IMG/VR virus record: IMGVR_UViG_3300020154_000003
Span: 302,039 to 366,038 of that record
DNA: 64,000 bases
Reading direction: 5' to 3' (one strand)
The position numbers and the translations under genes are program-made. Positions 28,556 to 64,000 of this stretch are shown in pieces. How positions within the stretch are numbered: the stretch's first letter is position 1; every line of letters starts with the position of its first letter. The notes under the pieces are model-generated. The model was not told the origin of the DNA, did no database searches, and saw nothing but the letters and a program-made list of their open reading frames with translations.

Positions 28556-31500
28556 TTAATCATCATCTTCTTCACTATCCTCATCATTATCATCCTCTTC
28601 GTCATAAGCTTCTGCAGCTAACAAGTCATAATATTCATCATCGCTGGTCATTTTCTTCTTTTTGTTCAGTTTTTTCAGCGCAGCAAGTTCGATTGCATAA
28701 TATTCCTCAAAAATCTCAACACCTCTAGGGATGGTTGATAATTTTACCTCATCAGGGATGTTGAATTGGTTTTTGAATTTTTTCACGAATTGGGTTTTCA
28801 ATCCAAAGGTAGCCTTAGACATACCTGCATTTAAAAAGTCGTATTCTTTCATATCCTTATCAGCGAATAAATCTTTACGGGCACAGCTTAAATAAAGCCC
28901 ATTAAAATGATAGAGATCATAAACTCTAAAGTTCTTTATCAGTACGAAATCACCCTTTTCAAGAGTATCATTAACTGATTTAACTACTTTATTCTGATTG
29001 CTTTCCTTCAGCTTATCATTTAAAGTTTTGATCTTTTCTTGGTATTCATCCAACTCTTCCAAAGCATTCTCTGCAGGTAGTTTAAACCCTTTCCAAATCA
29101 ATTCTGGATTATAACCAGTACGGTTCCAGAACTCTAATTCCTTTTCTTCGAGAACTAACGATTCTTCATAGTCATCAGCATCAAAATTTTTCAATTTCAA
29201 TTCATCGCCTCCAAAATATTCTCTTTTCGCAGGGTCTTTAATAAGTATCTGCTTTCTTATTTCAGGGGCGAATCCTTCAAGCAACGCACTAACCCTTTTA
29301 TTGAATGATGCAACATATTTTCCAACGTTATAATCGCCAGTCATCTCAGGGTTTTCTTCCAAATCCTTCGGAGATATTAATTGAGATGCAATTATGTCCT
29401 CTCCCTTTTCATTCTTAATCATGGCACTATCACCATGTCCGGGTTTCGTACCGATATTTACATAATATACATAACTATCTTGTTCAGGTTCTGGTGGCAA
29501 CATATGTGCAGCCTTTTGATATTTTTCTTCTAACGTAGAATCATCCTGACCATAAATTTTTTCATACTCTGCAATGACTTGTTGGTTTCGTTGCTGAATA
29601 AGTAACTCCATGTGCGCCTGCTTGGCCTTCTTTTTACCTGTCTTATCATTCCCTCTATTTACATAGGTGGAGATACTATTTTTCAATTTCTTCTTAGTAG
29701 CAATTTTCTTTAAAGGAATTTGTTTGTAATAAATTTTCTTCAAATACTCATTGTAGTATTCCACAAATTCATCACCCTTACCCATCAAGATCAACTTCAA
29801 ACCTTTGTCAATGAAATCTTCAATATATTCAGACATAGTTTTGGATTTGATTGTATTACCAGTCAACTTGATTTTTGGTGGGACAACCTTTCCAGTTTTT
29901 TCATCAATGCTTTCTTCAGTTAAGTTGGCATAATTGATACGAGACAAGTTTAGTGAACTCTGCCACATACCATCCAAGTCAACTCCGATATAAGGTGAAT
30001 CCATTAGATCGTTGAATTTCTCAACAACCGCTTCAACACCCGTATATTTTTTACCACCACTTTCATATACCCATGCATCTTCAATGGATATTGGCTCTTC
30101 TCTACATACATTTCCCTCAATATCCAATAGAGTAAATTTAGGGTACGAAAAGTTAATACCGTCAGTTACCGCCAGCAACGGTACGAAAGTGTACTTCTTA
30201 AAATAAGTTATCGCTTGACGTAATTGAATACGTCCAGTACATGTAATCCTAGCTGCACAAATGTTATCAGACCAGTTAAAAGCAACACCTGAACCCAAAG
30301 CACCAAACAATGAGTTGTTCAAGATTTTAATAGGTAGCTGCTTAACCTTAAACTTATTTCTCTGATCTTTCGGTAGCGGAGATTTATCACCAGCTAAAAA
30401 CTTAAACTCATTACGAGTCGTAGTCAGGTATAAAAGAATTTTCTTAATAACGCCAGTGATGTCGAAAGTAGGGAAGATACCATAATGCAACTGATTTGAA
30501 GGGTACATACCCTTGAAGTCAATTTTCGTAATATTCTCACTAAACCCTTTTTTAAAACACCTTGCAAGGCCACCAGAGAACTTTTCTTGCTTATCGGGGC
30601 AAGGTATCGCCAATCCATTTTCATAACTCCATGTGGTCATAATCAAGTTCCACACAGCAGCATTACCCATTGTACAAACCCTTTGATATGAGGTTGGTAC
30701 AATTTTAGCCAACAAGAATGAACTTTGATTGTACAGAGAATCTACCTTATCGGTTTCCCACAAGTCATCCAACAAATAACGTCTTACAATGTCAGCACCC
30801 TTAATGAATTTATATTTACCGTACTGTACAGTTTTAGACTTGAGCCACGTAATTGCCTCAGGACTCATTTGAGACAAAATTGAATTTCTTAAATTCTTGC
30901 GAGTCTCTTCATCGGCTTGAGATAACTGTAAATCGTATAAGTGAACAGCTTGATCCTGATATTGTAATGGTACACGTTCATACTCATTATTTTCAGGATT
31001 AATAATATAGACCTTATTCTCACGCCATGTTTCATGAATGAATTCACCATCCACGTACATACGATTAGGTTTTGCAATTTTCTCGAATTTGCAAATATAT
31101 TTTAACTTATTACTTTTTATCTCGCTATTTACTGCTGCAGTCTTTTTAACTGCATGAAGAATATCGAGAATTGAGTAGCCCCACATTTTTGTGGCTTTGT
31201 ATCGCTCAGTAGTGCCTCCGAATTTCACACTACTCTTTTTAGTTTCGTCCTTCTTAATTCTACGACTAAACCTTCTCACTCCATCTTTGTCAACATATTC
31301 AGTGTTGTCTAATGTTGTGCGAATCAACGACAAATTAATACCTAATATCCCTGCTCTCCCAAGAATAAAATCAAAGTCAAAGTCTTCCGAGTTAAATCCT
31401 GCAATTACTGCTGGTTTGATGTGGTTAACTAAGTTAAAGAACTTGATGATTAGACCCTTCTCTTCTTCATCATCATTTTCTTTTTTTACTTCAAGAATTT

Positions 31501-32365
31501 CTTCAAATCCTCGATTATCCCTTACACCTATTTGAAATATTCTACCATTTTGCCATTTCAAACTAGTTGTCTCAATATCGAAAACTAATTTATGTAAGTC
31601 TTCATAATCTTCAAACCCTTTATACAAACGGCAACCTGTCGATATGAAAAATTGTTCATCTGGCTTAATGGAATAGAAGAGGTGTTTATATTTATATTCA
31701 TTCTTTATCAATTTCAGTAAGAAATCACAAAGATCATTCGCCCATTTCAGAACGCTTTTCTTAAAAACATTTCCAGCAAACTCGTAATAAGCTTTACTGA
31801 TAAAGTTCAAAGCTTCTATTTTATTATCGACCTTACTACCACCTTTATCATCGTCTTTTTTCGTGTCTTTGTTATTTTGTTTTAACAACTTAACAACGTC
31901 ACTATGAAATTCCTCATTATAAAAGGAGGGGAGTGGTAATGGAAATTTAATGTCTTTGAATCTTGTCAATTCGTATTTTTCCCACATATCAATACCGCCT
32001 TGCTTCAAAAATTCAAGAATGGCATTGTATGATTTAGTACTTGATACTTTGATAGTAAATCCATCTTCGAGCCTTGGATGCTTACCAGTAGCAAGATTCT
32101 CCATTTTGATCTCGAACTTTTGTTCGGCATCTCTGCGTTTATTTATGTCGCCACCAAACAGTTCAATACCGTTTTTTTCAAGGTTCTTAAGATAAACGAA
32201 TGGAGTATATTGTATTCTTTTAAGTGCAGGTTCCTTTTCAGGATGATGAATTATACAATCTGCATAATTCGTGTGATAGTATGTTTCAACATTAACTAAA
32301 TACTTTAAATCGTTGTGCCCTTCTAAAAATGAACTAATTTCTTTTATTATCGCTTCTTTCTGCAT
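28556..32365 (-). CDS. Family B DNA polymerase with 3'-5' exonuclease
   Basis: ExoI FDIET, ExoII FNSEDFDF, ExoIII YLLDD; motif A DFKGMYPS, motif B KILNNSLFG, motif C AVTDG. Confidence 0.92.
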   Translation of the reverse strand: MQKEAIIKEISSFLEGHNDLKYLVNVETYYHTNYADCIIHHPEKEPALKRIQYTPFVYLKNLEKNGIELFGGDINKRRDAEQKFEIKMENLATGKHPRLEDGFTIKVSSTKSYNAILEFLKQGGIDMWEKYELTRFKDIKFPLPLPSFYNEEFHSDVVKLLKQNNKDTKKDDDKGGSKVDNKIEALNFISKAYYEFAGNVFKKSVLKWANDLCDFLLKLIKNEYKYKHLFYSIKPDEQFFISTGCRLYKGFEDYEDLHKLVFDIETTSLKWQNGRIFQIGVRDNRGFEEILEVKKENDDEEEKGLIIKFFNLVNHIKPAVIAGFNSEDFDFDFILGRAGILGINLSLIRTTLDNTEYVDKDGVRRFSRRIKKDETKKSSVKFGGTTERYKATKMWGYSILDILHAVKKTAAVNSEIKSNKLKYICKFEKIAKPNRMYVDGEFIHETWRENKVYIINPENNEYERVPLQYQDQAVHLYDLQLSQADEETRKNLRNSILSQMSPEAITWLKSKTVQYGKYKFIKGADIVRRYLLDDLWETDKVDSLYNQSSFLLAKIVPTSYQRVCTMGNAAVWNLIMTTWSYENGLAIPCPDKQEKFSGGLARCFKKGFSENITKIDFKGMYPSNQLHYGIFPTFDITGVIKKILLYLTTTRNEFKFLAGDKSPLPKDQRNKFKVKQLPIKILNNSLFGALGSGVAFNWSDNICAARITCTGRIQLRQAITYFKKYTFVPLLAVTDGINFSYPKFTLLDIEGNVCREEPISIEDAWVYESGGKKYTGVEAVVEKFNDLMDSPYIGVDLDGMWQSSLNLSRINYANLTEESIDEKTGKVVPPKIKLTGNTIKSKTMSEYIEDFIDKGLKLILMGKGDEFVEYYNEYLKKIYYKQIPLKKIATKKKLKNSISTYVNRGNDKTGKKKAKQAHMELLIQQRNQQVIAEYEKIYGQDDSTLEEKYQKAAHMLPPEPEQDSYVYYVNIGTKPGHGDSAMIKNEKGEDIIASQLISPKDLEENPEMTGDYNVGKYVASFNKRVSALLEGFAPEIRKQILIKDPAKREYFGGDELKLKNFDADDYEESLVLEEKELEFWNRTGYNPELIWKGFKLPAENALEELDEYQEKIKTLNDKLKESNQNKVVKSVNDTLEKGDFVLIKNFRVYDLYHFNGLYLSCARKDLFADKDMKEYDFLNAGMSKATFGLKTQFVKKFKNQFNIPDEVKLSTIPRGVEIFEEYYAIELAALKKLNKKKKMTSDDEYYDLLAAEAYDEEDDNDEDSEEDDD

Positions 32366-32706
32366 TTTGTAATCTTAAGCGTCTTCTTTGACGGATTGTA
32401 AATATAGTTTTTATCTTGAAAAATACACACATGTTTCTTTAAATATTTTTCAGGATTGGGAGGGAATACGTTGATTATCCACAGTGCTGACATCAAATTA
32501 CCACCAAATATTTCAACCAGAGAATAATCTGAAGAAATTAAGAATTCCATCGATAATTTTTCAACTATTTCTGGCCTTATTTCCTTTTGTGTGATTAAAA
32601 ATCGACCACATTCATTAACTATTTCTCGTAAACGTTCTTCGGTAAAATCTTGTATGAGAAAACTTTCTAGTATTTCTTGTATAGAACTGTAAGGATATTC
32701 ACTCAT
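32347..32706 (-). CDS. Hypothetical protein
   Basis: 119-aa ORF overlapping the helicase stop and polymerase start. Confidence 0.55.
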   Translation of the reverse strand: MSEYPYSSIQEILESFLIQDFTEERLREIVNECGRFLITQKEIRPEIVEKLSMEFLISSDYSLVEIFGGNLMSALWIINVFPPNPEKYLKKHVCIFQDKNYIYNPSKKTLKITKCRKKR

Positions 32707-34520
32707 TTTTTATATTTCTTCCTTAAGAAAGCAAGGACTTCTGACAAGACAGTTTCATCTACATTGGATTTGTAATCCTCATTGTCCATTACTTTAGTTA
32801 TTTCCTTTCTCTTCTTTTCAATCATATTGAATACATGCTCATCAATACTATCCTTTATAATTATTGGATAAATGAATACCGTGTCTTTTTGCCCGATCCT
32901 ATGTAAACGATCAGATACTTGATCATATTCACCCACACTAAATGGTAACGAGGTCATAAATAACTTGCTTGCTGCTGTTAGAGTAAGTCCATACTTTGTT
33001 GTAGCCACACTAGCAATAAAAACTTTGGCTTTTCCGTTAGGGTCTTGGAAATCGTTCTTTACCCTATTTCTTTCAATTTCATCTTGATCGCCAGTATGAA
33101 GTACCGCAACGTCCTTCCCTATTTTTTCATAAAGTTTAAGAAGGGGAGGTTTGAACATATCAACGATTACTGCTTTCTCACCCTCATCCAATAATCTATG
33201 TGTTAAATCGGTAACTGCATCAATCTTCAATAAAGAAGTGTATTGTCTTAGTCTCAGCATGATTGTGAGTACGTTAACTGCACTCATCTCATCGGACGAG
33301 AAGATTTCATTAGCAACTCCTTCTTCAATCTTATTGTATGTTTCGAGTTGGTCGGGGTTCATCTCAATGACAATTCTATTATAGATTTTGTCAGGTAAGT
33401 TTTTAAGAACATCAACCTTTCTCTTGCGATATGTATATGGTGTAATTTTGTGGAATAACTCTTCCAATTTGGCCATCCCTTCTTCGAACCTCCAACCACC
33501 GCGAACATTTTTGTCCTGAACCATTCCGCAATAGCTTTCATAAAAGACTTTCTTGGTAGGAAAATCGAGAGGTGCAATCTGATTCAAGATTGTGTAAAGT
33601 TCTATCGCTTTATTTGGTGCAGGAGTACCTGAAAGAAATACTTTACATGGAATTTCTTTAAAAATTCGTTTAAAATTCTTGTAAGTGTTCGAATCAGTAT
33701 TCTTCAAAAGATGTGACTCATCACAAATGATACATTCAACAAATCCTAAGTCAAGATCAAGAAATTTTTTCATTGTCTTTTTCTTATCACCACCATTAAA
33801 GTAGTCATAATTAACAATGACATATTTAGCTTCCTTGATTGAATATTTATTGTGTTTAAAATTTATAATGTGCGCCTTGGAGCCTCGACTAAACTTATCA
33901 ACCTCATCGTAATAATTGAATTTTAAACTGTTAGGAGTAATTACAAATACCTTTTTAAAGCCCATCATCTCAGCGAAGGCAATGGAGCACAAGGTCTTCC
34001 CTAATCCCATTTCTAATGAAAGAAGACCAGATTTGACCTTTTTAAGAAACATTGCAGCAACAACCTGATGCGGATATAATTTAGTACCTTCCTTTAAGTA
34101 CCTTAATACTTCAGGTTCATACTGCTGGTAGTTTTTTTCGAGTTCATCTTTAAAGGCAATCGCTTCGGTATTTTTTAGCCGCAACGCCTCTAACTTGTTA
34201 ACCTTTTCAACCTCAATTTCATCAAGTTTTTTTATTTGGGCGAGGAATTCTTGTCTACCTTCTACACCAAATTCGAATTTGATTTTTTCTGATCTCTTGT
34301 ATGATTTAATAATTTCATACAATCCTTTTGTATGGACATGCCAGCAATGATCTTCTACACTGAAGGTTCTCAATTCTGCTGGCAACGCTTTTATACGGTC
34401 GTTGAGTTGGTTATTTGACAAAAACCTAACCAGATACCATGCTTGTTTTTTAATTCTTTCGCAGGTAACAACAAATACAGGTTTGGTTAATATAACACCT
34501 CCACGCCCAAAATTACTCAT
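32703..34520 (-). CDS. SNF2-family (SF2) helicase/ATPase
   Basis: LYPHQ, EMGLGKT, CDESH, LSGTP, GLTLT, DRLHRIGQ. Confidence 0.92.
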   Translation of the reverse strand: MSNFGRGGVILTKPVFVVTCERIKKQAWYLVRFLSNNQLNDRIKALPAELRTFSVEDHCWHVHTKGLYEIIKSYKRSEKIKFEFGVEGRQEFLAQIKKLDEIEVEKVNKLEALRLKNTEAIAFKDELEKNYQQYEPEVLRYLKEGTKLYPHQVVAAMFLKKVKSGLLSLEMGLGKTLCSIAFAEMMGFKKVFVITPNSLKFNYYDEVDKFSRGSKAHIINFKHNKYSIKEAKYVIVNYDYFNGGDKKKTMKKFLDLDLGFVECIICDESHLLKNTDSNTYKNFKRIFKEIPCKVFLSGTPAPNKAIELYTILNQIAPLDFPTKKVFYESYCGMVQDKNVRGGWRFEEGMAKLEELFHKITPYTYRKRKVDVLKNLPDKIYNRIVIEMNPDQLETYNKIEEGVANEIFSSDEMSAVNVLTIMLRLRQYTSLLKIDAVTDLTHRLLDEGEKAVIVDMFKPPLLKLYEKIGKDVAVLHTGDQDEIERNRVKNDFQDPNGKAKVFIASVATTKYGLTLTAASKLFMTSLPFSVGEYDQVSDRLHRIGQKDTVFIYPIIIKDSIDEHVFNMIEKKRKEITKVMDNEDYKSNVDETVLSEVLAFLRKKYKK

Positions 34521-35393: not shown

Positions 35394-35660
35394 TTATAGT
35401 TTAGCTGCTCTTACTCGCTTAAATTCAATAATTTCAGTGAACCTTTTTTTATCACCACAGTAGCCCATACCTGTAAAAAAGTCTGGATTAGCATCATGTA
35501 TAACTAAACCGTCCTCTATCAATTGAGTAAATTCTGCTGCTTTTTCGAGTATTAATTCTTTATTTTCAAGAGTTACAGGAGTTACTTGTAGTAATTCAGC
35601 AATCTCCCTTGTTTTAGTTCTACGATATTCTAAATCGGCAATCATTTCTTCTTTTGTCAT
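35394..35660 (-). CDS. Hypothetical protein, possible fibre accessory
   Basis: 88-aa ORF downstream of the fibre/LRR genes. Confidence 0.55.
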   Translation of the reverse strand: MTKEEMIADLEYRRTKTREIAELLQVTPVTLENKELILEKAAEFTQLIEDGLVIHDANPDFFTGMGYCGDKKRFTEIIEFKRVRAAKL

Positions 35661-35688: not shown

Positions 35689-36171
35689 TTATTCAATACC
35701 CAAGTATGTGTTTATTTTTCCCACAAAATAATCTTGATGCCCTTGCGTCCAAAAAGAACCAAAATCAGTAGTACTGATCAAAAGAATTTGATTTTTAGCT
35801 TGGATAACATTACCCATTTGAAGGGCAAATAGTACATATTGAAAAGCATCAATCATTTGTTTATATATTTCAGCAGGAACGCTGGTTTCTTGCTCCTGAG
35901 CGTTAAATTCGTCCAGTAATCCTTGGCAGAATGCCTTATCTTTTAACGTTTTTTTCATATCTTCTAGTAATGGAATGTCAATATTATTTTGTTCAATAAA
36001 GTCCAATATCGGTTGAGGGGATAGCCCAAATGATAATGCTTGAGGGAGTATAGCTTCTGCTCCACCCTGTAGTATCCCCATAGTTTTTTCATTAAAAGCA
36101 GTTAATCCATCTGCAGATAATAAGATGGTTGTCACTTCTTTTGTTTCTATTTCATAAACTATTCGTATCAT
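35689..36171 (-). CDS. Hypothetical protein, possible fibre assembly chaperone
   Basis: 160 aa directly downstream of the LRR genes, with its own upstream motif. Confidence 0.5.
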   Translation of the reverse strand: MIRIVYEIETKEVTTILLSADGLTAFNEKTMGILQGGAEAILPQALSFGLSPQPILDFIEQNNIDIPLLEDMKKTLKDKAFCQGLLDEFNAQEQETSVPAEIYKQMIDAFQYVLFALQMGNVIQAKNQILLISTTDFGSFWTQGHQDYFVGKINTYLGIE

Positions 36172-36207
36172 ATCACTTATTTTTTATAAATACTTATTTA
36201 TCAACTT

Positions 36208-38418
36208 TTAATTCATCGTGATTATCCATTCATAATTGTTAACTAACACATATACCTCTTCCTTGGCACTTGCAGGAGTTCCGTCATTCGACCCTAAAAC
36301 AAATCCAGTAGGTGCTTGGAAAGTACCTGAAGGTGCTGAATTAGTACCACCAATATTCAGAGTTTTACTCCCTACAGGCCATTTCGCCCTGTTGGTGTAA
36401 ATATTATTTAATGTATTATCCACATTAGTTCCTGACATTCCATTGTTCTGTAGAAGGATATTATTCGGAAGAAAATTATTACTACCTATTTGAAAGGTAA
36501 TATTTAACGAACAATTGTCTCCAAAGAACCCTTTGTTTGTTGCACCGTAATTTATATATTCATGGTTTGTGATTGCTGTTAATGATGGACAACTATCAAA
36601 CTGAACGTTATTATTGAATTTACACGTAGCTTCGCTTGTAGGGAACGTTATCCTTTCCAAATTAAGTGAAGTATTTATCGCAAATGAAGAAATTCCTGCA
36701 GTGGAAGTGATACCCGATAAATTTAAGTGAGTAAGACCACAGTTTGATGCAGTAAAAAAAGCAACATTTTTCATAACAGATAAATCAATATCCAAGGACG
36801 AGCAATCATAGATATTTAAGGTGGAAATGTTTGTGGCATGTCCATTAAAATTTTCAATAGTTGTTAAACCTGTATTCCCTCTAACTACTAATTGACGAAG
36901 ATATAACCAAGGTTGTGCCTCTAAACCAGTTAGGTCTGGTAAATATAATGATCCCGATATTTTACAGTGGTTTAAATACAATTGTTGGAGATTTATTAAA
37001 TCACTGAAATCAGGATTTGCACCTAAACCATTAGCAGATACTTGTCCAGACGTGCCTGCGTCACCTAAGTGTAAATATAATAGGTTAGTATACCCATTTA
37101 TTTTACTTATTAAATCAGAATTCGTTACAATATCCAGTTTGTTATCATACGCAAATAGAGTTGTCAAAGATGATAAACCAGAAGGAAGAGTTAAATCTTC
37201 ACATTCCACTCCCTGAAGATGAAGTGTCGTTAATGCACCACCATTTAACCCACTTAAGTCAATATTAGCAAATCTATTAAGTTCACTTGCTGAAATACCT
37301 AATCGCAAATCCTTAAGTAGCGTTTGGGAATTGGTAAGAGTAAAATCACCAGTTATTCGATTACCATAGAGATATAATCCAATTAAAGAGGGTGATATAT
37401 CACCATTAGTAAAACTTTTTGTCCAAAGTCTATTGGATTGGTGTATTCCAAAAAATTCTAAATTACTTGAAGCCAACGCATCATTAAAAATACTATCTGG
37501 TGTTGATGCTACTGCAGCGTTGCATAACCACATGAAGAAAATGCGCCAATTATTGGCGGGCACTGTAGGGTAAGTTACACCAGTAAGATTAACCAATCCT
37601 AATGCTAACTCTTTTAGATTTGTCATATGAGCAATATCCAAATTACCACTCAAGGCATCATAAGTATTTAGGAAATTGGGACTTGGTGACCAATGACCAA
37701 ATTGAATGACTTCACAATTAACTGCATCTGAAAGGAAATTATTAATATTGTTTAATGGCGTAACACTCCCTATTTTAAATTTCTTAGTAGATGCGGGGGC
37801 TTTACCATTCAATGTACTTAAATTTAATAATTCAGTTAGTTCAATAGTTTCTATCTTACTTAAAGAATCAGCATTGAAATTTAGAGTATCAATCCACATC
37901 TCATTTAATGTTACATTCTTTAAATTTTCAAATCCCTTTAAATTTAATGTCAATGTGCCAGTGCCATTATTGTTAGTTGATGTTCTCCCTTGATTATTAG
38001 TTCTAGGTACAATTGATATTACTTCCACAATTCTAGGATCAGTAATAACAAATTTATATTTACGAGTTGCAGGTGTTAACACACTTGAACTAGTATATCG
38101 CCATCCTCGAAGTGTTGCATTTTTAGGTAGATATGTTTCATCAAATAATCTGTTTCCTATCTGATTTGCTTCGTTCCAACCACCAACCAATAATGGAACT
38201 GATTCGACCCCATATGTATCTAAAGTATTTGTCTGCGTATTGTCAGGTTTAGTACCACTAACATTTTCAATATCAAATAACATGAAACCACCACGAGATT
38301 GACTAGGCACAGGTACTATTTCACTACCTAAATAAAAATCAAAAAAACGATTAGTACTTGGTAGACCGTTACTTTCAACCTCAATTTGACCCTGATGTTT
38401 ACCTATAAATCCGAACAT
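36208..38418 (-). CDS. Leucine-rich-repeat protein A
   Basis: LxxLxxLxLxxN/C repeats (LINLQQLYLNHCKISG etc.); paralogue of the next gene. Confidence 0.8.
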   Translation of the reverse strand: MFGFIGKHQGQIEVESNGLPSTNRFFDFYLGSEIVPVPSQSRGGFMLFDIENVSGTKPDNTQTNTLDTYGVESVPLLVGGWNEANQIGNRLFDETYLPKNATLRGWRYTSSSVLTPATRKYKFVITDPRIVEVISIVPRTNNQGRTSTNNNGTGTLTLNLKGFENLKNVTLNEMWIDTLNFNADSLSKIETIELTELLNLSTLNGKAPASTKKFKIGSVTPLNNINNFLSDAVNCEVIQFGHWSPSPNFLNTYDALSGNLDIAHMTNLKELALGLVNLTGVTYPTVPANNWRIFFMWLCNAAVASTPDSIFNDALASSNLEFFGIHQSNRLWTKSFTNGDISPSLIGLYLYGNRITGDFTLTNSQTLLKDLRLGISASELNRFANIDLSGLNGGALTTLHLQGVECEDLTLPSGLSSLTTLFAYDNKLDIVTNSDLISKINGYTNLLYLHLGDAGTSGQVSANGLGANPDFSDLINLQQLYLNHCKISGSLYLPDLTGLEAQPWLYLRQLVVRGNTGLTTIENFNGHATNISTLNIYDCSSLDIDLSVMKNVAFFTASNCGLTHLNLSGITSTAGISSFAINTSLNLERITFPTSEATCKFNNNVQFDSCPSLTAITNHEYINYGATNKGFFGDNCSLNITFQIGSNNFLPNNILLQNNGMSGTNVDNTLNNIYTNRAKWPVGSKTLNIGGTNSAPSGTFQAPTGFVLGSNDGTPASAKEEVYVLVNNYEWIITMN

Positions 38419-38419
38419 A

Positions 38420-40648
38420 TTAATTCATCGTTATTGTCCACGCATAATTATTTACTAATACGTAAACTTGTTCTTTAGCACTCGCAGGAGTACCATCATT
38501 TGATCCCAATATAAATCCGGTAGGGGCTTGGTAAATTCCGGTTGGAGTGGCATTTGTTCCTCCAATATTCATACTTCTAGCTACACTCACATTAAAAAAA
38601 CTCCATTTAGACCTATTTGTGTATAAATTATTTATTGTAGCATCAACATTAGTAAGATTTATTCCATTATCTTGGATAAGAATATTTGTTGGTATAAAAT
38701 TATTTGTTCCAAACGGGAATGTCATATCTAAATTACAACCATTGAAATGGAATAAGGCTGGTACGGCTGGACTGTTGTAATTAACGTTTTCTAAATTTAT
38801 TATTGTTGTTAATCCAGTACAACCAATACCACTAAACGCATGACTATTAGTGAATCTACTACGTGCTTCAGTTGTCGGCATAACCAATTCAGTTATTGGA
38901 GTATTATCAATAATAATAGCAGTAAATTGTGAAGTACTTGTTTTACCACTTAAATTCAACGAGGATAATTGAGTATCAATTGCACGTATATCTGTCAATG
39001 AGGTAAAAGTACTTGGTATTGATGCATCCAATTGAATACATCCATTACATCTGAACGATAATAACCCTGTGTGGGCTGTAAAATTGACTAAATTAGTTAA
39101 GCCAGTATTAAATCCAACGCCAATATGTTGTAATTTGTTTACGTTAGGCAGTATCCAATTACCACCTATCTTACAACTACCTATCATCAGAGTAGTCATA
39201 TTTATCAATCCACTCAAATCGCCATCATCACCTAATCCATCAGAAGTTTGAGAAAAATATGAATTACTTGCAGTATTTACATTATTTGAAAATGATAATT
39301 CGGTTAAAGATGAGTAACCGTTAATTTTAGTTAATAAATCAGGAGTTGTGGTTATAGATAATTCATTATCATATAAAACCAAGTCTTGAATAAATGGTAG
39401 TGTATTGGGTAATGTTATGTTACTACATAACACACCCGGAATATGTAATGATCTTAATTCTCCACCATCCAGACCACTTATGTCAATATTGTCAAATCTA
39501 TTAGTTTCACTTTGATTTAAACCAACTCTAAAATCACGTAAGGTAGAACGTGATTCAGTAATACTTATATCACCAGTCCAATTATTACCATAACAATAAA
39601 ATGCTAATAAATTTGATGAAATTTCATTATGTGTTATATTTTTACTATACGTTTTATTATTACTAATAAAAACCATACACCTCAAATTCGGGCTATTAGT
39701 AATAATTTCTTCAAAAACATTCATATTGAATGAAGATGAAGCACTAGCAGAGAGATTTTGAATATGTACCCAACTCCAATCTGTTTTACCACTCGGCAAG
39801 ACCAAAGAAGTCATATTAGTATTCGTTGATATAAGGAACTCTTTCAAATTAGTCATATGACTAACATCTAAAACACCCCTCAATGTAGTTGTACCTACTG
39901 CAGGACTAGATATTAAGCCAGAATACAATCCAAACACTAATGCACGAGCATTTGTGGCTTCTGACAAGAGAGTAGTTACCCCTGTTAAATTACATTGTGC
40001 TAGAACAATACTTTCAACAGTTGAAGGGATTTGTCCAGTTACACCAGTCAGACCTAACGTCTCTCTAAGTTGAAAATGTATTAATTTTGGATTATTAAAC
40101 TTAAAATTTACTCTTGTGATAAATGATTCGTGTATATCAACAGCCTCTAAATTGGGAAATTGCCTCATATCCAAATCAATTTCACCAACCAAATTGTTTA
40201 TTGTAGCTTGAGGTGTTGAATTTAGTAAGTGAGCAAATTGTACCAAAACAGTTTCATGATATGGAAGTATTGTTTTAATTTTTCTGGTTGGTGGAGAAAA
40301 TGCCGCACTTGAACTATGACGGAAATATCGAATCTCAGTATTTGTGTAAACAAATGTGTATTCCATTGAATAGTTTATACCCCCTATTTGAGCACCGCCA
40401 GCAAAAATTTGAACCCTAGCTGGTAATAGTGTTTTTGGATTGCCATCATAAGCGGTTAATACAGTAGATAATAATGCTTGTAAATTCGGATTCGTTCCAC
40501 TAACATCATCAAAATCAAATATATAACGAGCATTAATTCCCCCGTATTTACTTCCATGTCGAGATGCAATATCTCGATTAGAACCATTGACAATGCCGTT
40601 GGCTTCCTGTATAATAAAACATGTTGGTGTTCCTTTAAATCCAAACAT
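38420..40648 (-). CDS. Leucine-rich-repeat protein B
   Basis: LRRs; C-terminus QAPTGFILGSNDGTPASAKEQVYVLVNNY.W.ITMN nearly identical to LRR A. Confidence 0.8.
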   Translation of the reverse strand: MFGFKGTPTCFIIQEANGIVNGSNRDIASRHGSKYGGINARYIFDFDDVSGTNPNLQALLSTVLTAYDGNPKTLLPARVQIFAGGAQIGGINYSMEYTFVYTNTEIRYFRHSSSAAFSPPTRKIKTILPYHETVLVQFAHLLNSTPQATINNLVGEIDLDMRQFPNLEAVDIHESFITRVNFKFNNPKLIHFQLRETLGLTGVTGQIPSTVESIVLAQCNLTGVTTLLSEATNARALVFGLYSGLISSPAVGTTTLRGVLDVSHMTNLKEFLISTNTNMTSLVLPSGKTDWSWVHIQNLSASASSSFNMNVFEEIITNSPNLRCMVFISNNKTYSKNITHNEISSNLLAFYCYGNNWTGDISITESRSTLRDFRVGLNQSETNRFDNIDISGLDGGELRSLHIPGVLCSNITLPNTLPFIQDLVLYDNELSITTTPDLLTKINGYSSLTELSFSNNVNTASNSYFSQTSDGLGDDGDLSGLINMTTLMIGSCKIGGNWILPNVNKLQHIGVGFNTGLTNLVNFTAHTGLLSFRCNGCIQLDASIPSTFTSLTDIRAIDTQLSSLNLSGKTSTSQFTAIIIDNTPITELVMPTTEARSRFTNSHAFSGIGCTGLTTIINLENVNYNSPAVPALFHFNGCNLDMTFPFGTNNFIPTNILIQDNGINLTNVDATINNLYTNRSKWSFFNVSVARSMNIGGTNATPTGIYQAPTGFILGSNDGTPASAKEQVYVLVNNYAWTITMN

Positions 40649-40656
40649 TTCATAAA

Positions 40657-43600
40657 TTAATTAGACTGCATATCAGGAGTGGTCACAACATCTAACCTAC
40701 CACCATTCATGCATATTGCAGTTATTATATCTTCTGAATGCGCTGGAGAACTACCATTTGTTGTTGGATTAGTAAGTACAGGAGTAGTTCCGAATGGGAA
40801 TCTATAACGACCACTAGCCCAAGTAAATGATTTGTTTGATGTATCCATTATAATCTTAAACATATACTGTTTACCAATTGTTTCACCAGTATAATTGAAC
40901 GATGTTACGTTACCAGTAACATTAAGTAAGAATATATCGGCAGTTGTAAGGTCTACTACAACATTTCCAGCAACACTACCGCTAAATACAACTAGAGTTG
41001 GTGTTATTTGACTGGTTATACCTGTCACATAATTCACATCAACCAACGAATGTTTGGTGAAACCAGTTGCATAATTACCTTTATATTCAATACCTGCTTT
41101 TATCGCTCTACCATCAGTAAATGTAGTACCTGTTTTAGTGATAATGAATCTAGCAAGTTCATCATCATCATTGTTTCTAAAAGTAACATCAAATCCGTAT
41201 GGTGAGAACAACACATCATTAGCAGTGCCATCATCTTCAATGATTTGTTGAAGTACTTGAGGTTGCTCATCTGGTTTATCGTATTGATTTGCATTACTTA
41301 CGTCTAAATGTGCATACCTACCGAAGTTATTCCCGTTGGCAGTCGCTTCAATACCTGAACTACGAACTTTAAATTCATTATATTTATCTGTCAAATCATC
41401 AAAGCTGATGGTCGTTCCATTAAAGTGTTTTACTTCAAAAGAAGTTGAACCCATCGTAAAACCATCATCATATTCAGTTGTTACCGAAAGAGCAGCATTA
41501 AAAGCACTGTTACCGAACGTAACTGTACTGCTATGACTCAAACTAGTTGAGTCTAACGAAGTATCACCACTCAATGAACCACCCAATATTATCACACCAT
41601 TATTGTCTGTCAAACCATTACCAACAAGAATGCTAGTACTACCACCAGTTAACGTGGAAGTTATGCCAGTTACATAAGCAACATCAGGTATTGATCTGGC
41701 AGTATATAATTCATGTAGATTTTCATTATACTCAATGACAGCATTTCGCATCACTAATTTACCAGCATCAAGTAATCCATTTTCGTCTAATCGGTAAAGT
41801 CCTGTATTTAATGTTTTGGGATCGTGGTATGTATATCCGTTTAATAATATCTTATTTTCAGGCAGTAATGAGACAAACCCACCAGTTAGACTTATACTAC
41901 CACCACCGTATCCTAATTTGAAATCATGGTTAATAGTACCATCGATATTCAAGTTTATTAAATTACCTCCTTGTCCATTTTCATCTGATAGATTATTACC
42001 ATTATATCTATTAAATGCTCCCGATGCTAAAATAGTACCGTTTGGCAACCAACATACTTTACTTACCTCAGTAGATGGTATATGAAATGTATATGTAAAA
42101 CCAGTACCCGGATCAAAACTACCCACATTAGTTCCACCACTAGTTATAAGCTTTAATCTAGGATTATTGAATCTGGCAATAATAACTTCACCAGTCTCTT
42201 GATTAACATCAAACCACATACCTCTTTCACCGTCAGAAAGAACATTAAAACCAGCAACTCTCGAACCGTCTGAATTTAATTTTGTAAAACCCGGAGAAAA
42301 CACACCATCATAATAATTATACGCACCGCAGGCATATATTGATCCACCAGACAATTGAAATACTCTCTCAACCCAACTATTGGCTGTTCCACCTGCGCCA
42401 CCCCATCTAAATCCACTACCATAAGTAAATCCTGTATCAACACCCCCATTCTCATTTAGACGAACAATACTCCATGCACTAGTCCCATCAAATTCTGTGA
42501 AAGTACCACCTACAAGAATCTTATCATCATCCTGTACGAAGATTGAATAAACAGAACCGTTAAAACCAGTACCGCCTGAGAAAGTAGCGTCATAACTACC
42601 ATCTGAATTCAATCTAGCTATTCTATTTACCGTATTTCCATCAATTTGAGTAAAATCTCCACCAATAATTATCTTACCATCTTGTTGCACATCGACAGCC
42701 CTTATTGTGTTATTAATGGAGGCAGGGTTAAAATCACCACTATTAGTACCATTTTCAATTAAGACTGTTATATATTTTTTAGTTAAATCGGTATTCCATG
42801 ATGTGAAATTACCTACAACAATCACTTTATATGCTCCATCACTCGGAAATTGTGGATCAATAACTTTAGTTTGAGAAACATAGCCAGAATTTCCACCTAG
42901 ACCAATATTAAATCCACTTTCAACATCGAAAAATAACCCCATTCCGTAATTTTGTAGCTGAAGTCTACTACTAGCGATATTAATTTCAGTATGTCCTTCA
43001 AGGGTTCCTCCGAGTCCAAAGTTTCCTGTACCACCTGTGTTCACTGTTCTAACCAATCCATTACTAGCGGTTTCACCTTGAGATATTACCCAAGCCTTAT
43101 CAACTAATGATCTATCAACATAATTTTCTGAATAATCAGCATCATAGATTGCAGCACTTCCACCGATAATGATTTGATCAATCACTGGAATAGTCCCAAT
43201 ATTTACTTCTCCATTACTTTTGAATCTAAAAACACCGGGATTGTTTAAATTAACATCTGTTGCGTATGTACCAGCATAAATAAAACCATCTGAATTTTCT
43301 ATAATAGTATACGAGTAAATCTGTGAATCCAGAGAGTCTCCAAAATTTAACTCATGTATACCATCAGCAGATAATTTACACAAATACTTAGTAGCCGTAC
43401 CGTTATAATTTTGAAAACTACCTGCAACAAGTATTTTATCACCTTCGGTGAGTTTCATTGCATTTATATCATTATCAAAACCAGTACCACTAGAGAAAGT
43501 AGTGTCATATGTGCCATCCTCATTAAGTCTATGAATACGACCTGTATGTCCTTCAAAAGTTGAGAACTCACCTCCTATGATCAATTTTCCTGATGACTGT

Positions 43601-44409
43601 TGTAAAATACCTCTAAAATAGCCTCCAGATGATCCTGTAACTATGTTTGCACTAAAAGTTGTATCTACGCTACCATCACTATTCAATCTAGCGATACCTA
43701 ATGCAGGTGTCGAATTAACTGCTTCAAAATAACCTCCAACAACAATTTTACCATCTTCTTGTATGCAAATAGCCGACACTTCACTATCAAAACCACTTCC
43801 AAGGTTGGTCATAAATGAGGTATCTTGAGTACCATCTGAATTCAGCTTAACAAAATGGCTACTAGAATTACCGTTAAAATCATCAAACCATCCACCAACA
43901 AATATTTCTCCGCTTTCAGACTTAGCTATACAGTTAGCATAATTACCCACACCACATGCAGTGCCAATAGCAGTGTTAAAATCAGTATCTAAAGTACCAT
44001 CAGCATTTAATCTAGTGAACCCATTTGTTGTTGTTCCATTAAATTCACTAAAGTAACCACCTATTAGTATTTTATCATCGTTTTGCATTGCAACACACAA
44101 ACCGTCACTGTCAAATCCAGTTCCCGTATTTGTTGTAAATGTGGCATCAAGTTCACCAGTCGCACTTACTTTTTGTATTCCGTAACCAGTCTCAACGCCA
44201 TTCCATGATGAATCTTCACTAGCCATTATTACACTACCATCCGCTTGAAGACCAAAACCATACGCAGTACTAAAATTAAGACCAGTACCGGGGACAAAGA
44301 ATGTCTCGCCTCTAAATGTAATTGTTGATGCTGATTTACCTATTGTTAGGTCATTTTCATGACCGTGATAAAATTTACTGTTATCTAGTAATTGTTTTGT
44401 TATTAACAT
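40657..44409 (-). CDS. Tail fibre/appendage protein with two delta-60-type beta-propellers
   Basis: Repeats of QxDGKI(L/V)(V/I)GGxF...RLNxDGxxDxxF; FTKHSLVDVNYVTGITS connector. Confidence 0.75.
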   Translation of the reverse strand: MLITKQLLDNSKFYHGHENDLTIGKSASTITFRGETFFVPGTGLNFSTAYGFGLQADGSVIMASEDSSWNGVETGYGIQKVSATGELDATFTTNTGTGFDSDGLCVAMQNDDKILIGGYFSEFNGTTTNGFTRLNADGTLDTDFNTAIGTACGVGNYANCIAKSESGEIFVGGWFDDFNGNSSSHFVKLNSDGTQDTSFMTNLGSGFDSEVSAICIQEDGKIVVGGYFEAVNSTPALGIARLNSDGSVDTTFSANIVTGSSGGYFRGILQQSSGKLIIGGEFSTFEGHTGRIHRLNEDGTYDTTFSSGTGFDNDINAMKLTEGDKILVAGSFQNYNGTATKYLCKLSADGIHELNFGDSLDSQIYSYTIIENSDGFIYAGTYATDVNLNNPGVFRFKSNGEVNIGTIPVIDQIIIGGSAAIYDADYSENYVDRSLVDKAWVISQGETASNGLVRTVNTGGTGNFGLGGTLEGHTEINIASSRLQLQNYGMGLFFDVESGFNIGLGGNSGYVSQTKVIDPQFPSDGAYKVIVVGNFTSWNTDLTKKYITVLIENGTNSGDFNPASINNTIRAVDVQQDGKIIIGGDFTQIDGNTVNRIARLNSDGSYDATFSGGTGFNGSVYSIFVQDDDKILVGGTFTEFDGTSAWSIVRLNENGGVDTGFTYGSGFRWGGAGGTANSWVERVFQLSGGSIYACGAYNYYDGVFSPGFTKLNSDGSRVAGFNVLSDGERGMWFDVNQETGEVIIARFNNPRLKLITSGGTNVGSFDPGTGFTYTFHIPSTEVSKVCWLPNGTILASGAFNRYNGNNLSDENGQGGNLINLNIDGTINHDFKLGYGGGSISLTGGFVSLLPENKILLNGYTYHDPKTLNTGLYRLDENGLLDAGKLVMRNAVIEYNENLHELYTARSIPDVAYVTGITSTLTGGSTSILVGNGLTDNNGVIILGGSLSGDTSLDSTSLSHSSTVTFGNSAFNAALSVTTEYDDGFTMGSTSFEVKHFNGTTISFDDLTDKYNEFKVRSSGIEATANGNNFGRYAHLDVSNANQYDKPDEQPQVLQQIIEDDGTANDVLFSPYGFDVTFRNNDDDELARFIITKTGTTFTDGRAIKAGIEYKGNYATGFTKHSLVDVNYVTGITSQITPTLVVFSGSVAGNVVVDLTTADIFLLNVTGNVTSFNYTGETIGKQYMFKIIMDTSNKSFTWASGRYRFPFGTTPVLTNPTTNGSSPAHSEDIITAICMNGGRLDVVTTPDMQSN

Positions 44410-47400
44410 TTTTTTATTTTATATAAATACTTAAATTATTATCCTAATATGGTGCCGCCCATCCAATTTATACCGTTATACACTAACATAATTGACGTAT
44501 AATTTGCGTTAATTATCGCTGTTGAACTTCCATTAATTAAATACCCATTACCATCAACAGTTATATTATTATCTAACGCACCACCTATTGCATCGCAAAT
44601 ATAAATCTGCTGTTTAAAAGTAGGCGATGGCGGTAAGTAAATAACTCCTGCGGTATCCCCAAAATAGTGAATGAAATGAGATGACGTTGACGCTGTAAAG
44701 GATGAGCCAGTTACAATCTCCAAACCAACTACATTTACTGCAATCCCTGATGTTATGCCAGTTACGTAGTTAACATCCACCAATGAATGTTTCGTAAAAC
44801 CTGACGATAGATCAGTAACATAACGGAACTTCTGTGTCGATAATAATTCAGGATGTACAACAAAATATTCTTCAAAATCAGAATAATTGCGCTTAAATAT
44901 TGGATTTTCCTGTACTCCACTATTGATATACATTAGAGTATCAAATACAAAAACCATATTATTAGGGTTGTTATCTGAACCTGTATGTTGATCAATATAA
45001 TTACCATTCAAATCTACCCTAACCATTTGAGATTTAGATGACATGAATATATGATAGTCTTCATTTACGAATACATTACTATATGTACCAATACTTGGTA
45101 CTTGAGCAACGTTCGTATTGAATTCTTCATCGAATACTCCTGTCGCATCAACAACCATAAGGCCAGTATTCACCGATGAACTTCCATATGTTGAAAATGA
45201 ACCTGATAGTAAAAATCTATCAGTACTATCCAATTTTATAATTGAAGAAACTTGTCCATCAAATATTTCAGGAATAAATGTTTCACTTATTGTCCCATCT
45301 GTATTTAAAGCAACTATATAAGGAGTGCTTAACGTATTTCCACTATACTCAGTAAAAGCCCCAACAACTATAAGAGTATCATCATTTAATACCGCAAAAT
45401 CATATGGAGTGTCATTAAATCCAGCACCAGTATCAAAAGTATTATCTAAAGTACCATCTGTGTTTACTCTTCTTATATAAGTCACACCACTTACGGATTC
45501 AGTTATTCTTATGTAAAGTTTACCATCACTCAAACCTAACACTTTACCCACATTATGGATAGATTCACCACTTAAATAAAACGTAAAACCAGTATCAACA
45601 GTACCATCATGTAATAATTTAACAAGACAAGTACATTGGAAGCTATTAAAACTGTTAAATACACCATACACATAAATGTTTTCATCGTCATCAACAAAAA
45701 TACCTGAAATATTATTCGATGGGCCTGAACCAATATTGCTTGAGAAATTTTCATTTATAACTCCATCACCACTTAATAATGCTATACCACTTGAATTAAT
45801 ATCGTTAACGTCAGTAAATGCACCTGAGATCAAAAGATCACCTGTTGAGGGTATTCTTGCCATCCTATTGATACTTGCATTGACAGAAATATAATTGAAC
45901 TGGTTTAGTTTTTCATATGATGTTGAAATAGTCTTTGACGTTTCAGAATAATCACGGAAATTTAAATGGAAACCATCATTAACTTTATCTAAAGTTAACG
46001 TAACTACATCACCAGAAATGGCTGTTTGACCTGTCAATTCACCACCCAAAACCACCGTGTCAAGAGCACGTTTAACGCCATTATCTGCCAGATTAAGTAA
46101 GTTGCTCGTTAAACCAGTTACATAGTTAACATCGGCAATACTATGTTTTGTAAATCCTGACGAATAATCAGAATTATAGTTCATTTTATCATTTAGAGTA
46201 ATATTTTCTAAAGGAAAATCTGCTTCAAGACCAGTATCTGAAAGTAATGCCAAGTTAATACACGAATTTCCTTGATATGTCGTAAATGCCCCTCCAACTA
46301 GATATTGAACTGGTGAAGAATCCACTTTTTCAATTACTTTTGGCCCTCCACTAAAACCAAACGCAGCATTGAAGCCAGTACCAATATTAAATGTATTATC
46401 ACGAGTACCATTACTATTCAAACGAACAATTCTATTTGTTGTTGTTCCTGATAAAATAGTAAATCTACCAACTGCAATAATTTTAGTACTATCTACTAAC
46501 ACATCATGTACTGTATGAATAACACTGCTACTAAAACCAGCATCCATATCAAAGGTATTGTCAACACTACCATCAGTATTTAAGCGAATTAATTTATTAT
46601 AACCAGTAACCCCGCTATATGAAGAAAAACTACCACCCACCAAAATTTTATCATCTGGTTGAATTTCAATCACAAATACTGTGCTATTAAAACCAGCACC
46701 AGCATCAAATGTATTATCAACACTACCATCAGTATTTAAGCGAATTATTCTATTGAATCCAGTAACACCACTGTATGAAGTAAAATTACCACCAACCAAA
46801 ATTTTATCATCAGATTGAATCTTAATTGTATTCACTGTACCATTAAAACCAACACCGACATCAAATGTGTCATCAATACTCCCATCATTATTTAATCTAA
46901 CAATACGATTAGATGTGACTCCATCATAACTAGTAAAATCACCACCAACCAGAACTTTACTGCCGACAACTAATTCATCTACTTCAATAATATTCACATC
47001 ACCATTAAAACCATCACCAACAATGAAGGTATTATCGAATGCAAGACTAGAATCGTTTAATCTTAGTATTCTATTTTGCGTTGAGGCATTAAATGTTGTT
47101 GAGAATCCACCACCAACATAAAGACCATCAGTAGTCCTCGCCAATGTTTTTATATTTGATATATTTACCGATCTTTCAAGATTATATTGTGTATCATACT
47201 TTAAAAGTGTTATGTCGTTTCCAACATAGATGGCCGCACCGTATGATAATATTGCTAATACTTCACCGCTACTATAAAATTTACTATTTAATTGAATTCC
47301 CTTACTATATGAGTTCCAAAGATTGAATTGGGATGACTTCTGTGTAAAAATACCATCACTAGCTATAGTTGTCGATTCGGTTAACTCCCCACCAATTTTA

Positions 47401-52943: not shown

Positions 52944-52970
52944 TTATTTTTTTGTATATCTATCTTAATA

Positions 52971-61274: not shown

Positions 61275-61288
61275 TTTATAAACTGTTT

Positions 61289-63747: not shown

Positions 63748-63999
63748 CTATATATCAGTCGGTTGTAAATTCACTGTTTGCCCAATTATTGGTTGCTCAA
63801 CTACTTCGTCTTTCTTTTTGATGGTCTTTTCTCGCTCAATGTAATCGTCCTTGGCTTTATCAAGTGCTTTATTCAAAAATTCACTTTTCATCTGCCTATC
63901 CAAATCTGAATCTAAAGAACCAGTAGTATTTTTAGTGATTGTTGCGTTAGGCTTCGAATGTTCGATACACCTAATCTCCAATGTATCATTATTAAGAAT
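63748..63999 (-). CDS. 3' fragment of a gene entering from beyond the right edge
   Basis: Frame stays open from the edge (ILNNDTLEIRC...); track start is an internal TTG. Confidence 0.55.
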   Translation of the reverse strand: MLNNDTLEIRCIEHSKPNATITKNTTGSLDSDLDRQMKSEFLNKALDKAKDDYIEREKTIKKKDEVVEQPIIGQTVNLQPTDI

Positions 64000-64000
64000 A

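Follow-up and report, generated by a model that had tools for sequence, protein, structure and literature searches.

A paralogous LRR gene pair behind a fibre-like gene

The window analysed here is a 64,000-nt stretch (positions 302,039 to 366,038 of IMG/VR record IMGVR_UViG_3300020154_000003) from the 366-kb genome of a soil phage. Its minus strand carries, in 5' to 3' order, a gene for a 1250-aa protein (40657..44409), LRR gene A (P0002, 742 aa; 38420..40648), LRR gene B (P0001, 736 aa; 36208..38418) and, directly downstream, a 160-aa gene that belongs to a small family (35689..36171). The 1250-aa product is fibre-like, contains DUF5122 beta-propeller repeats, and its last ~110 residues (40660..40989, minus strand), the conserved extreme C-terminus, form a module that we refer to as the dock. 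Both LRR genes are intact ORFs without internal stops, readable without recourse to an alternative genetic code, and a single base separates the TAA of gene A from the ATG of gene B; a terminator scan found no convincing terminator between the genes. An earlier sequence-only reading of this DNA had announced a tandem pair of about 740-aa proteins with a common MFGF start, and both ORFs were recovered exactly as it gave them, each with that start. The gene A product consists of an N-terminal FGFxG motif, a beta-sandwich (residues ~9-139), an LRR solenoid (~154-660) and an alpha/beta cap (~661-742), the latter showing the highest conservation within the family. On the minus strand, its N-terminal domain (residues 1-150) maps to 40199..40648 and its cap to 38423..38668; gene B encodes the same architecture, with the cap at 36211..36456.

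The two genes are paralogues, with about 37-39% identity overall (BLASTP 37% from end to end, E 2e-135). Binned by 40 columns, the alignment shows 17-33% identity across most of the first 350 residues (one bin reaches 42%), 47-53% at about residues 350-430, where the NRF.NID.SGL..GG.L..LH..GV.C..TLP stretch lies, and 78-100% over its final ~45 columns. The previously described divergence of the N-halves and alignment of the C-halves is thus borne out, and the ends are strongly alike, although "about 40 near-identical residues" was a slightly generous wording for 34 identities in 43 positions (79%). Over the final 60 codons nucleotide identity is 67%; 19 codons match exactly and 20 carry non-synonymous differences. 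As the remaining 21 differ only synonymously, recent gene conversion is ruled out as the origin of this likeness, which is best attributed, at the codon level, to purifying selection.

Predicted fold and distribution of the LRR family

The AlphaFold2 model (pLDDT 84.6, pTM 0.74) predicts a beta-sandwich, about 20 LRRs arranged as a curved solenoid with a parallel beta-sheet, and an alpha/beta cap; residues 1-6 of P0002 (MFGFKG) are disordered in it. Foldseek matched this model to BRI1 at E 8e-8, and VIA returned Z scores of 17.8 for FLS2 (541 residues aligned), 17.5 for YopM and 16.2 for the internalin InlF, as well as matches to the LRRs of SspH1 and IpaH. Tandem units of 20-30 residues with an LxxLxLxx(N/C)xL-type core are also recognisable in the primary structure, with sixteen units of LxxLxLxxN-like spacing between residues 167 and 598 of P0002, and a profile search against the PDB retrieved an internalin at E 3e-4. 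The initial label of LRR solenoid is therefore right by fold, while the matches to Pfam LRR_4, LRR_5 and LRR_EndoS all fall below gathering scores. The N-domain of P0002 folded alone gave an uninformative model (pLDDT 56.7), with generic beta-sandwiches as its best VIA matches (Z 5.7).

P0002 and P0001 belong to an undescribed family, which comprises 84 clusters at E<=1e-30 (full-length proteins of ~740 aa in many cases), is known only from uncultured phages and has no Pfam or PHROG counterpart. A tblastn search of 50,697 GenBank phage records gave no match, DNA searches of GenBank phages gave none either, and neither the IMG/VR searches nor the GTDB species genomes (query P0015) yielded any. 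On the other hand, LRR clusters of uncultured Caudoviricetes are numerous in BFVD and the ESM Atlas, so that the notion that LRR proteins are uncommon in phages applies to cultured phages but not to these. Among the family members listed, most begin with M(x0-3)FGFxGK/H and terminate in YVLVNNYxWTITxN. The backbones that carry the family are very different, namely the 366-kb jumbo phage and crAss-like contigs, and several adhesin-like domains (PKD, fn3, Gly_rich_2 and EPTP) are fused to the LRR proteins of relatives.

Genomic partners and the attaching end

Gene order upstream of the LRR genes is conserved. The dock, ~105 aa long in relatives, precedes the first LRR gene in 12/12 relative loci, where it forms the end of fibre-like proteins that differ in length (module-bearing ORFs span 122-1250 aa). 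In the nine relative loci listed, the end of the module ORF lies -1 to +17 nt from the LRR ATG, and in three more loci found with the module as query the ATG lies 4-12 nt past the end of the match. P0017 in locus L005, the sole architecture without the N-domain, has no module upstream. The whole 366-kb genome contains one such module but two LRR genes, and LRR sequence recurs nowhere else in it; this stoichiometry counts against the attachment scheme proposed below. Two weak leads connect the module with tail fibres. Two of its sequences, independent of each other, matched PHROG 7760 ("tail fiber protein") at E 0.005, and in the Atlas the dock reached a feature score of 0.96 with a cluster that contains PF26209, a family covering the C-end of phiTE gene 241, whose annotation reads putative tail fiber protein. 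Precomputed tables list PF26696 (PTL_trimer), a family that none of the papers searched mentions, for two of the upstream proteins. A complex predicted between the dock (160 aa) and the P0002 N-domain (150 aa) scored 0.00, which speaks neither for nor against binding.

Around the LRR loci we found fibre-like DUF5122 propeller and YadA-like proteins, Laminin_G_3 and CBM proteins, crAss muzzle and ring proteins, adjoining SprB and collagen-like proteins, and GH108 and Amidase_3 lysins. Fibre-like and adhesin-like neighbours occur in all contexts, their identity as tail fibres resting on weak matches. In the window, the LRR locus lies ~20 kb from a recognisable baseplate (wedge) gene (14379-16235), between replication and nucleotide-metabolism genes. 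Both the distance and this setting count against a tail-fibre role. The position between replication and nucleotide-metabolism genes, together with the failure to find a signal peptide or a recognisable virion domain in the LRR proteins and the resemblance of their fold to that of injected effectors such as YopM, SspH1 and IpaH, would suit LRR effectors or decoys that act inside the infected cell by binding host proteins, perhaps to counter defence systems, and whose location beside fibre-like genes would be incidental. We regard such a role as very improbable, given that the LRR gene follows fibre-like proteins in backbones as different as those of jumbo and crAss-like phages, is tightly coupled in translation to the upstream fibre-like gene, and has relatives fused to domains of extracellular type.

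Downstream, conservation is looser. Immediately behind the LRR gene(s), BLASTP among downstream ORFs detected distant homologues of the 160-aa gene in 7/14 examined relative loci, and the gene is absent from the other seven; the 88-aa second downstream gene is not a conserved neighbour. Accordingly, the idea that two small downstream genes serve the LRR proteins retains its first candidate but loses the second. The 160-aa protein has no Pfam or PHROG family, a PDB profile search gave no relevant match, and hhalign of its family with the phiTE tail fiber assembly protein reached E 0.51; these comparisons gave no similarity to known Tfa families.

Which end of the LRR proteins faces the virion was weighed from both sides. 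Mean pairwise column identity amounts to 0.5-0.7 in the cap and to 0.16-0.3 at residues 61-100, a stretch of the N-domain that is the most variable family-wide. In classical fibres, the strongest conservation would mark the attachment end; here it is at the C-end, which counts against attachment by the N-end. The sequence-only reading had indeed proposed a conserved virion anchor or chaperone site. With the conserved C-terminal ~100 aa in this role (the chaperone being, for instance, the 160-aa protein), the variable N-terminal beta-sandwich and N-terminal LRRs would form a distal receptor-binding tip. In line with this arrangement, the cap is the only part common to other phage LRR architectures, which would need an anchor too, and the 160-aa gene often comes next after the LRR gene(s). 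Nonetheless, it seems unlikely to us. The cap is shared by many other, including shorter, phage LRR proteins without this N-terminal domain, is followed by further, in several cases adhesin-like, domains in P0003, P0020, P0046 and P0059, and is internal in the giant proteins P0105 and P0151. Moreover, the invariant genomic partner sits on the N-terminal side, where the FGFxGK/H motif recurs, the residues that change fastest among close relatives (~350-650) adjoin the cap, and half of the examined loci do without the 160-aa gene. Because of the sharing of the cap with proteins devoid of the N-domain, and of the upstream partner and its recurrent N-terminal peptide, attachment to the virion is likelier to occur by the N-end than by the C-end.

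Cassette replacement and a proposed role in host recognition

Comparison of loci from the same lineage revealed marked differences between the LRR genes and their surroundings. In L007, flanks are 85% and 89% identical while the LRR genes are 68% (slot 1) and 35-38% (slot 2) identical, and DNA homology resumes in the last ~160 nt of the gene B cap, past the replaced cassette; in L012, flanks are 75% and 90% identical and both LRR genes 36-39%. Such divergence of the LRR genes between well-conserved flanks indicates that they are replaced as cassettes between related phages. In addition, L016 carries a gene-B-type LRR (59% identical) directly after the module. Mosaicism is seen within genes as well: L007b and L012b are 78-91% identical at residues 1-350, 15-58% at 351-650 and 86% at the end, and the match to a soil relative that is 92-94% identical breaks at window position 36836, inside gene B. 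Close relatives thus differ by both replacement and mosaicism, the behaviour of a host-range cassette. The earlier view of variable, binder-type proteins with conserved ends is supported, and their genes sit among fibre-like ones.

Variation at the level of single residues was of a different kind. The concave x positions of the repeats are the least conserved family-wide (0.23 vs 0.37, p 4e-9), which is the default for LRRs, but no excess of changes at these positions was evident in close pairs, so the predicted hypervariability of the concave face holds only in the former, general sense. In three close pairs, dN/dS by domain and at concave positions was 0.06-0.39 everywhere, with saturated dS (pS 0.5-0.8), and gave no sign of positive selection. 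A search for the template/variable repeat pair of a DGR detected, between 34000 and 45000, only paralogous stretches with 71-76% identity; with no template-like repeats and no further LRR copy in the 366-kb genome, DGR-type hypervariation was rejected.

Since the LRR genes always come after a fibre-end module and are exchanged like cassettes, they most likely represent interchangeable host-recognition parts of the tail. We lean, if modestly, towards P0002 and P0001 being monomeric adhesins that would sit at the distal end of a tail fibre of this phage as its exchangeable part for recognising the host. Adhesins could also serve a purpose other than host recognition, namely holding the particle in its habitat by binding non-host material (soil or biofilm polysaccharide, mucus-like matrices), as Ig-like decoration domains do. 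The carbohydrate-binding or adhesin type of several neighbours and fusions (CBM, Laminin_G_3, fn3 and PKD) and the origin of the sequence in a soil metagenome fit this possibility, and an adherence role has been proposed for a phage LRR (PMC10945359). It is nevertheless quite unlikely in view of the coupling of the LRR genes to the fibre-end module, and of the cassette replacement and mosaic LRR segments, which typically mark host-range determinants.

As host-recognising fibre parts, the LRR proteins would plug their N-terminal FGFxGK/H peptide and domain into the ~105-aa socket that ends the upstream fibre-like protein, here the 1250-aa product, and the solenoid would project outward and bind a host surface structure. 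Conservation of socket, plug and cap would render whole LRR genes or C-terminal LRR segments swappable by recombination between phages, and the tandem pair may provide two alternative specificities on one type of socket. The 160-aa product could be an accessory that is common without being required, helping in assembly or acting as a partner. A bolder generalization, which we advance tentatively as possible rather than probable, is that uncultured phages, probably infecting Bacteroidota, share an undescribed "plug-and-socket" system for host range. In such a system, the socket on unrelated fibre proteins would accept any LRR-family member via the FGFxGK/H plug, LRR cassettes, single or tandem, would move freely between jumbo and crAss-like backbones, and the family would become the first defined LRR-based one among phage receptor-binding proteins.

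Phage host range is set by receptor-binding proteins, and almost all characterised examples belong to two types, the trimeric fibre and the beta-helix spike. A family of monomeric LRR binders with a conserved interface would, if confirmed, constitute a new structural class of host-recognition module, and this interface would help to explain host-range exchange among soil and Bacteroidota-type phages; the case for such significance is built on sequence and predicted structure. The dock module, the FGFxGK/H start and the YVLVNNYxWTITxN end would also provide an annotation handle for genes that have no Pfam or PHROG label.

Several known systems resemble parts of this arrangement. The dock shares with the C-terminal domain of phiTE gene 241 (PF26209, Phage_phiTE_241_C) its position at the extreme C-end and a G..(I/F).(I/F).F.QDTT....TF motif, but hhalign aligned just 21 columns at E 0.058, below significance. 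Internalins, YopM, BspA-type proteins and plant LRR receptor ectodomains have the same solenoid (VIA Z 16-18), built of LxxLxLxxN repeats with variable concave positions. Unlike them, P0002 and P0001 are phage-encoded, lack a cell-wall anchor, secretion signal or kinase, and possess their own N-terminal domain and a strongly conserved C-cap. T4 gp34-37 and the adaptor-tailspike systems of G7C, CBA120 and K1-5 build modular or branched fibres in which a protein attaches through its N-terminus to the one before it, with trimeric fibres or beta-helix tailspikes as binders. The LRR loci have tightly packed consecutive genes in common with them and, on the reading favoured here, also a conserved attachment interface, exchangeable distal binders and more than one binder per phage, but their binders are presumably monomeric solenoids and their interface, consisting of the C-terminal ~105-aa module and the FGFxGK/H peptide, is undescribed. 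A further parallel is the jumbo phage Goslar, for which LRR-bearing fibre proteins have been predicted among its DUF7941 proteins (gp86, gp92 and gp161; bioRxiv 10.64898/2026.04.21.720040). In both phages the LRR or beta-helix domain comes after an N-terminal module for attachment, putative in the present case, and a part in host recognition is proposed from predicted structures. P0002 and P0001 differ in having a small beta-sandwich with the FGFxGK/H peptide and no Pfam family at gathering score, in their pairing with the C-terminal module of the upstream product, and in bearing no sequence relation to cultured phages.

Genome setting and the tandem LRR genes

The window covers the last 64 kb (positions 302039–366038) of a 366,038-bp virus record from a soil metagenome, has a G+C content of ~35%, and carries on its minus strand all long ORFs without an overlapping partner. 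The record ends (1–133 and 365906–366038, the latter being window 63868–64000) overlap by 133 bp with 98.5% identity, which suggests a complete genome, either circular or circularly permuted. The window encodes a baseplate wedge gene (14379–16235), DNA polymerase and SNF2 helicase (28556–34520), ribonucleotide reductase (60198–63586), and a run of four giant ORFs (1184, 1372, 1452, and 1250 aa; 40657–56525, minus strand). DUF5122 beta-propeller repeats make up two of the four (E 1e-84 and 1e-129), while the remaining two yielded no Pfam or PHROG match; a ~45-aa motif recurs in the 1372-, 1452-, and 1250-aa ORFs.

P0002 (38420–40648, minus strand) and P0001 (36208–38418, minus strand) are intact ORFs of 742 and 736 aa, the stop of the former and the start of the latter being separated by one base, which confirms the tandem pair of ~740-aa proteins described in the sequence-only reading. 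They are full-length paralogs (37% identity by BLASTP, E 2e-135; 39% by MAFFT) and, again as proposed, share an MFGF start and diverge in their N-halves, identity being mostly 17–33% over the first 350 residues (42% in one bin). It rises to ~50% at residues 350–430 and to 78–100% across the final ~45 columns. The claim that the last ~40 residues are near-identical was thus right about the strong C-terminal likeness but slightly overstated its degree, since the BLASTP alignment has identical residues at 34 of the final 43 positions. The last 180 nt of the genes share only 67% DNA identity, and 21 of the last 60 codons show synonymous differences only, which argues that protein-level selection has kept the common C-end. 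The same figures rule out recent gene conversion as its source. No other copy of any part of either gene was found in the 366-kb genome. A 111-nt stretch (37201–37311 versus 39425–39535), 71% identical between both genes, encodes a mid-LRR block (residues ~350–430) with a family-wide conservation of 0.4–0.5.

Protein family and predicted fold

A word search retrieved 16 relatives. An exhaustive profile search yielded 1,387 proteins at E ≤ 1e-3, of which 233 remained at ≤ 1e-10 and 84 at ≤ 1e-30, the strictest set containing many full-length proteins (~740 aa). Most members listed start with M(x0-3)FGFxGK/H and end with YVLVNNYxWTITxN. Family relations are star-like, with all pairs 31–42% identical except for three close ones, and P0001 is as distant from P0002 as either is from any other member. 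Conservation peaks in the last 80 residues (0.5–0.7), is moderate at residues 1–20 and 350–500, and reaches its minimum at 61–100. LRR proteins had been called uncommon in phages; this holds insofar as no homologs of the family were found in GenBank phages, but LRR proteins in general are frequent in uncultured ones. P0001 and P0002 matched no PHROG family and Pfam LRR entries only below threshold; the LRR family, its N-terminal motif, its C-terminal cap, and the upstream module described below all lack a Pfam or PHROG label.

An AlphaFold2 model of P0002, built from a 15-sequence alignment (pLDDT 84.6, pTM 0.74), comprises a disordered N-terminal hexapeptide, a beta-sandwich (~9–139), a solenoid (~154–660), and an alpha/beta cap (~661–742). 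The predicted solenoid resembles long LRR ectodomains and bacterial LRR proteins (Foldseek against BRI1, E 8e-8; VIA Z of 17.8 for FLS2, 17.5 for YopM, and 16.2 for internalin), in line with a sequence profile match to internalin (E 3e-4) and LxxLxLxxN spacing in sixteen repeats. Folded alone, the N-domain reached a pLDDT of 56.7 and matched generic beta-sandwiches only (Z ≤ 5.7). The cap region alone (profile positions ~620–746) ends many shorter LRR proteins, resembles by structure viral LRR clusters of 458–538 aa (TM 0.78–0.82), lies internally in giant proteins such as P0105, and precedes additional domains in P0003, P0020, P0046, and P0059. Close relatives of both window genes (at loci L007, 2635–3444, and L016, from ~5557) continue past the WTITxN end into such added C-terminal domains. 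The extension of P0003 (270 aa) has PHROG matches of unknown function only, and that of P0020 (~300 aa) matches EPTP and DUF6242-type propellers.

Upstream module and downstream genes

We examined 14 contigs of full-length relatives, 11 recovered via full-length family members (L003, L004, L006–L012, L014, and the P0012 contig) and three by an independent search that used the upstream module as the query (L016, L018, and L020); an additional locus, L005, encodes P0017, a shorter protein of the PKD-LRR type. This ~105-aa module forms the C-terminal end of the ORF immediately preceding the first LRR gene in all 12 relative loci tested on DNA (L003, L004, L006–L012, L016, L018, and L020), with a mean column identity of 67%. 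The module-bearing ORF ranges from 122 to 1250 aa, and its remainder varies by context (propeller, collagen-like, or nothing). Its stop lies −1 to +17 nt from the LRR ATG at nine loci, and in L016, L018, and L020 the ATG follows the end of the module match by 4–12 nt. P0017 has the cap and lacks the N-domain, and no module was found upstream of it in L005. The whole 366-kb genome contains one module and two LRR genes.

Weak hints, which agree in direction, would place the module in tail fibers: matches of two sequences to PHROG 7760 'tail fiber protein' (E 0.005), an Atlas feature score of 0.96 to a cluster with PF26209, and an hhalign alignment of 21 columns with PF26209 in the corresponding position (E 0.058). 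PF26209 represents the C-terminal end of gene 241 of phiTE, whose annotation reads putative tail fiber protein. For two of the upstream proteins with the module (L009 5034–5999 and L011 35–3280), an entry of PF26696 (PTL_trimer) appears in precomputed tables. Neighbor genes in other contexts are of the fiber, adhesin, or lysis kind, including YadA-like, Laminin_G_3, and CBM proteins, crAss muzzle and ring proteins, SprB, collagen, GH108, and Amidase_3. The SprB and DUF5122 neighbors hint at Bacteroidota hosts. L004 and the P0012 contig carry the crAss-type tail markers (crAss_MUZ, CrAss_Ring_1, and CrAss_Ring_2), and one cassette type would thus serve both jumbo and crAss-like backbones.

The LRR proteins had also been proposed to be served by two small downstream genes, which fits one of the two. 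Homologs of the 160-aa ORF (35689–36171) lie downstream in 7 of 14 examined relative loci, among them close ones in L007 and L012, distant full-length ones (21–27% identity) that follow the LRR gene(s) in L006, L009, and L010, and a fragment in L011. None was seen in L003, L004, L008, L014, L016, or L020; L018 breaks off within its LRR gene, and the P0012 contig is without DNA. No recognizable relatives of the 160-aa family were found. The 88-aa ORF (35394–35660, minus strand), on the other hand, is not a conserved neighbor of LRR genes; its 39% identical homolog in L012 (429–632) lies upstream of a DUF5122 gene, apart from the LRR genes.

Cassette replacement and proposed attachment polarity

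L007 and L012 are two contigs of the window's own lineage. In L007, the module and the 160-aa gene are 85% and 89% identical to those of the window, the first LRR gene, extended by 270 aa, shares 68% identity with P0002, and the second is only 35–38% identical to either window gene; DNA homology ends with the first LRR gene and restarts within the final ~160 nt of the second one. In L012, the module (75%) and the 160-aa gene (90%) flank two LRR genes only 36–39% identical to either window gene. In L016, which comes from the same metagenome, the module is followed directly by a P0001-type gene (59% identical), and either window type would therefore fit the first slot. The close pairs have mosaic sequences, as in L007b against L012b (78–91% identity at residues 1–350, 15–58% at 351–650, and 86% at the end), and dN/dS peaks at residues 501–650 in all three close pairs. 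At the contig level, the match to a 92–94% identical soil relative (2025 runs X3 and X4) stops at 36836 inside P0001 and restarts in the 160-aa gene. Window 36165–36836, the C-terminal third of P0001, is unmatched in these contigs, one of which joins 36836 to a stretch resembling 38420–38498; this suggests a recombinant C-end.

The conserved gene order (a module-ended fiber-like protein, followed by one or two FGF-LRR genes and often by the 160-aa gene), taken with the replacement of cassettes, the fusion partners, and a fold of the adhesin type, best fits P0001 and P0002 being exchangeable receptor binders at the tail-fiber tip; variable receptor-like binders had been proposed from sequence. 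Set against this evidence, habitat adhesins are improbable, and intracellular LRR effectors slightly more so. As tip binders, the LRR proteins would attach by their N-end to the upstream module-bearing protein: the invariant partner is encoded upstream and goes together with a recurrent, disordered peptide at the N-terminus, additional domains are tolerated at the C-end, and the fastest-changing region among close relatives adjoins the cap. These same observations speak against the opposite polarity of the sequence-only reading, a conserved C-terminal virion anchor, which we consider unlikely even though capping alone does not explain why the cap is so highly conserved.

Adaptor or branched-fiber systems follow logic like that proposed here for N-terminally attached tip proteins. 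An LRR gene has been noted in a vibriophage tail module (PMC10945359), and the nearest published analogs of the window proteins are the predicted LRR-bearing DUF7941 fiber proteins of jumbo phage Goslar (bioRxiv 10.64898/2026.04.21.720040).
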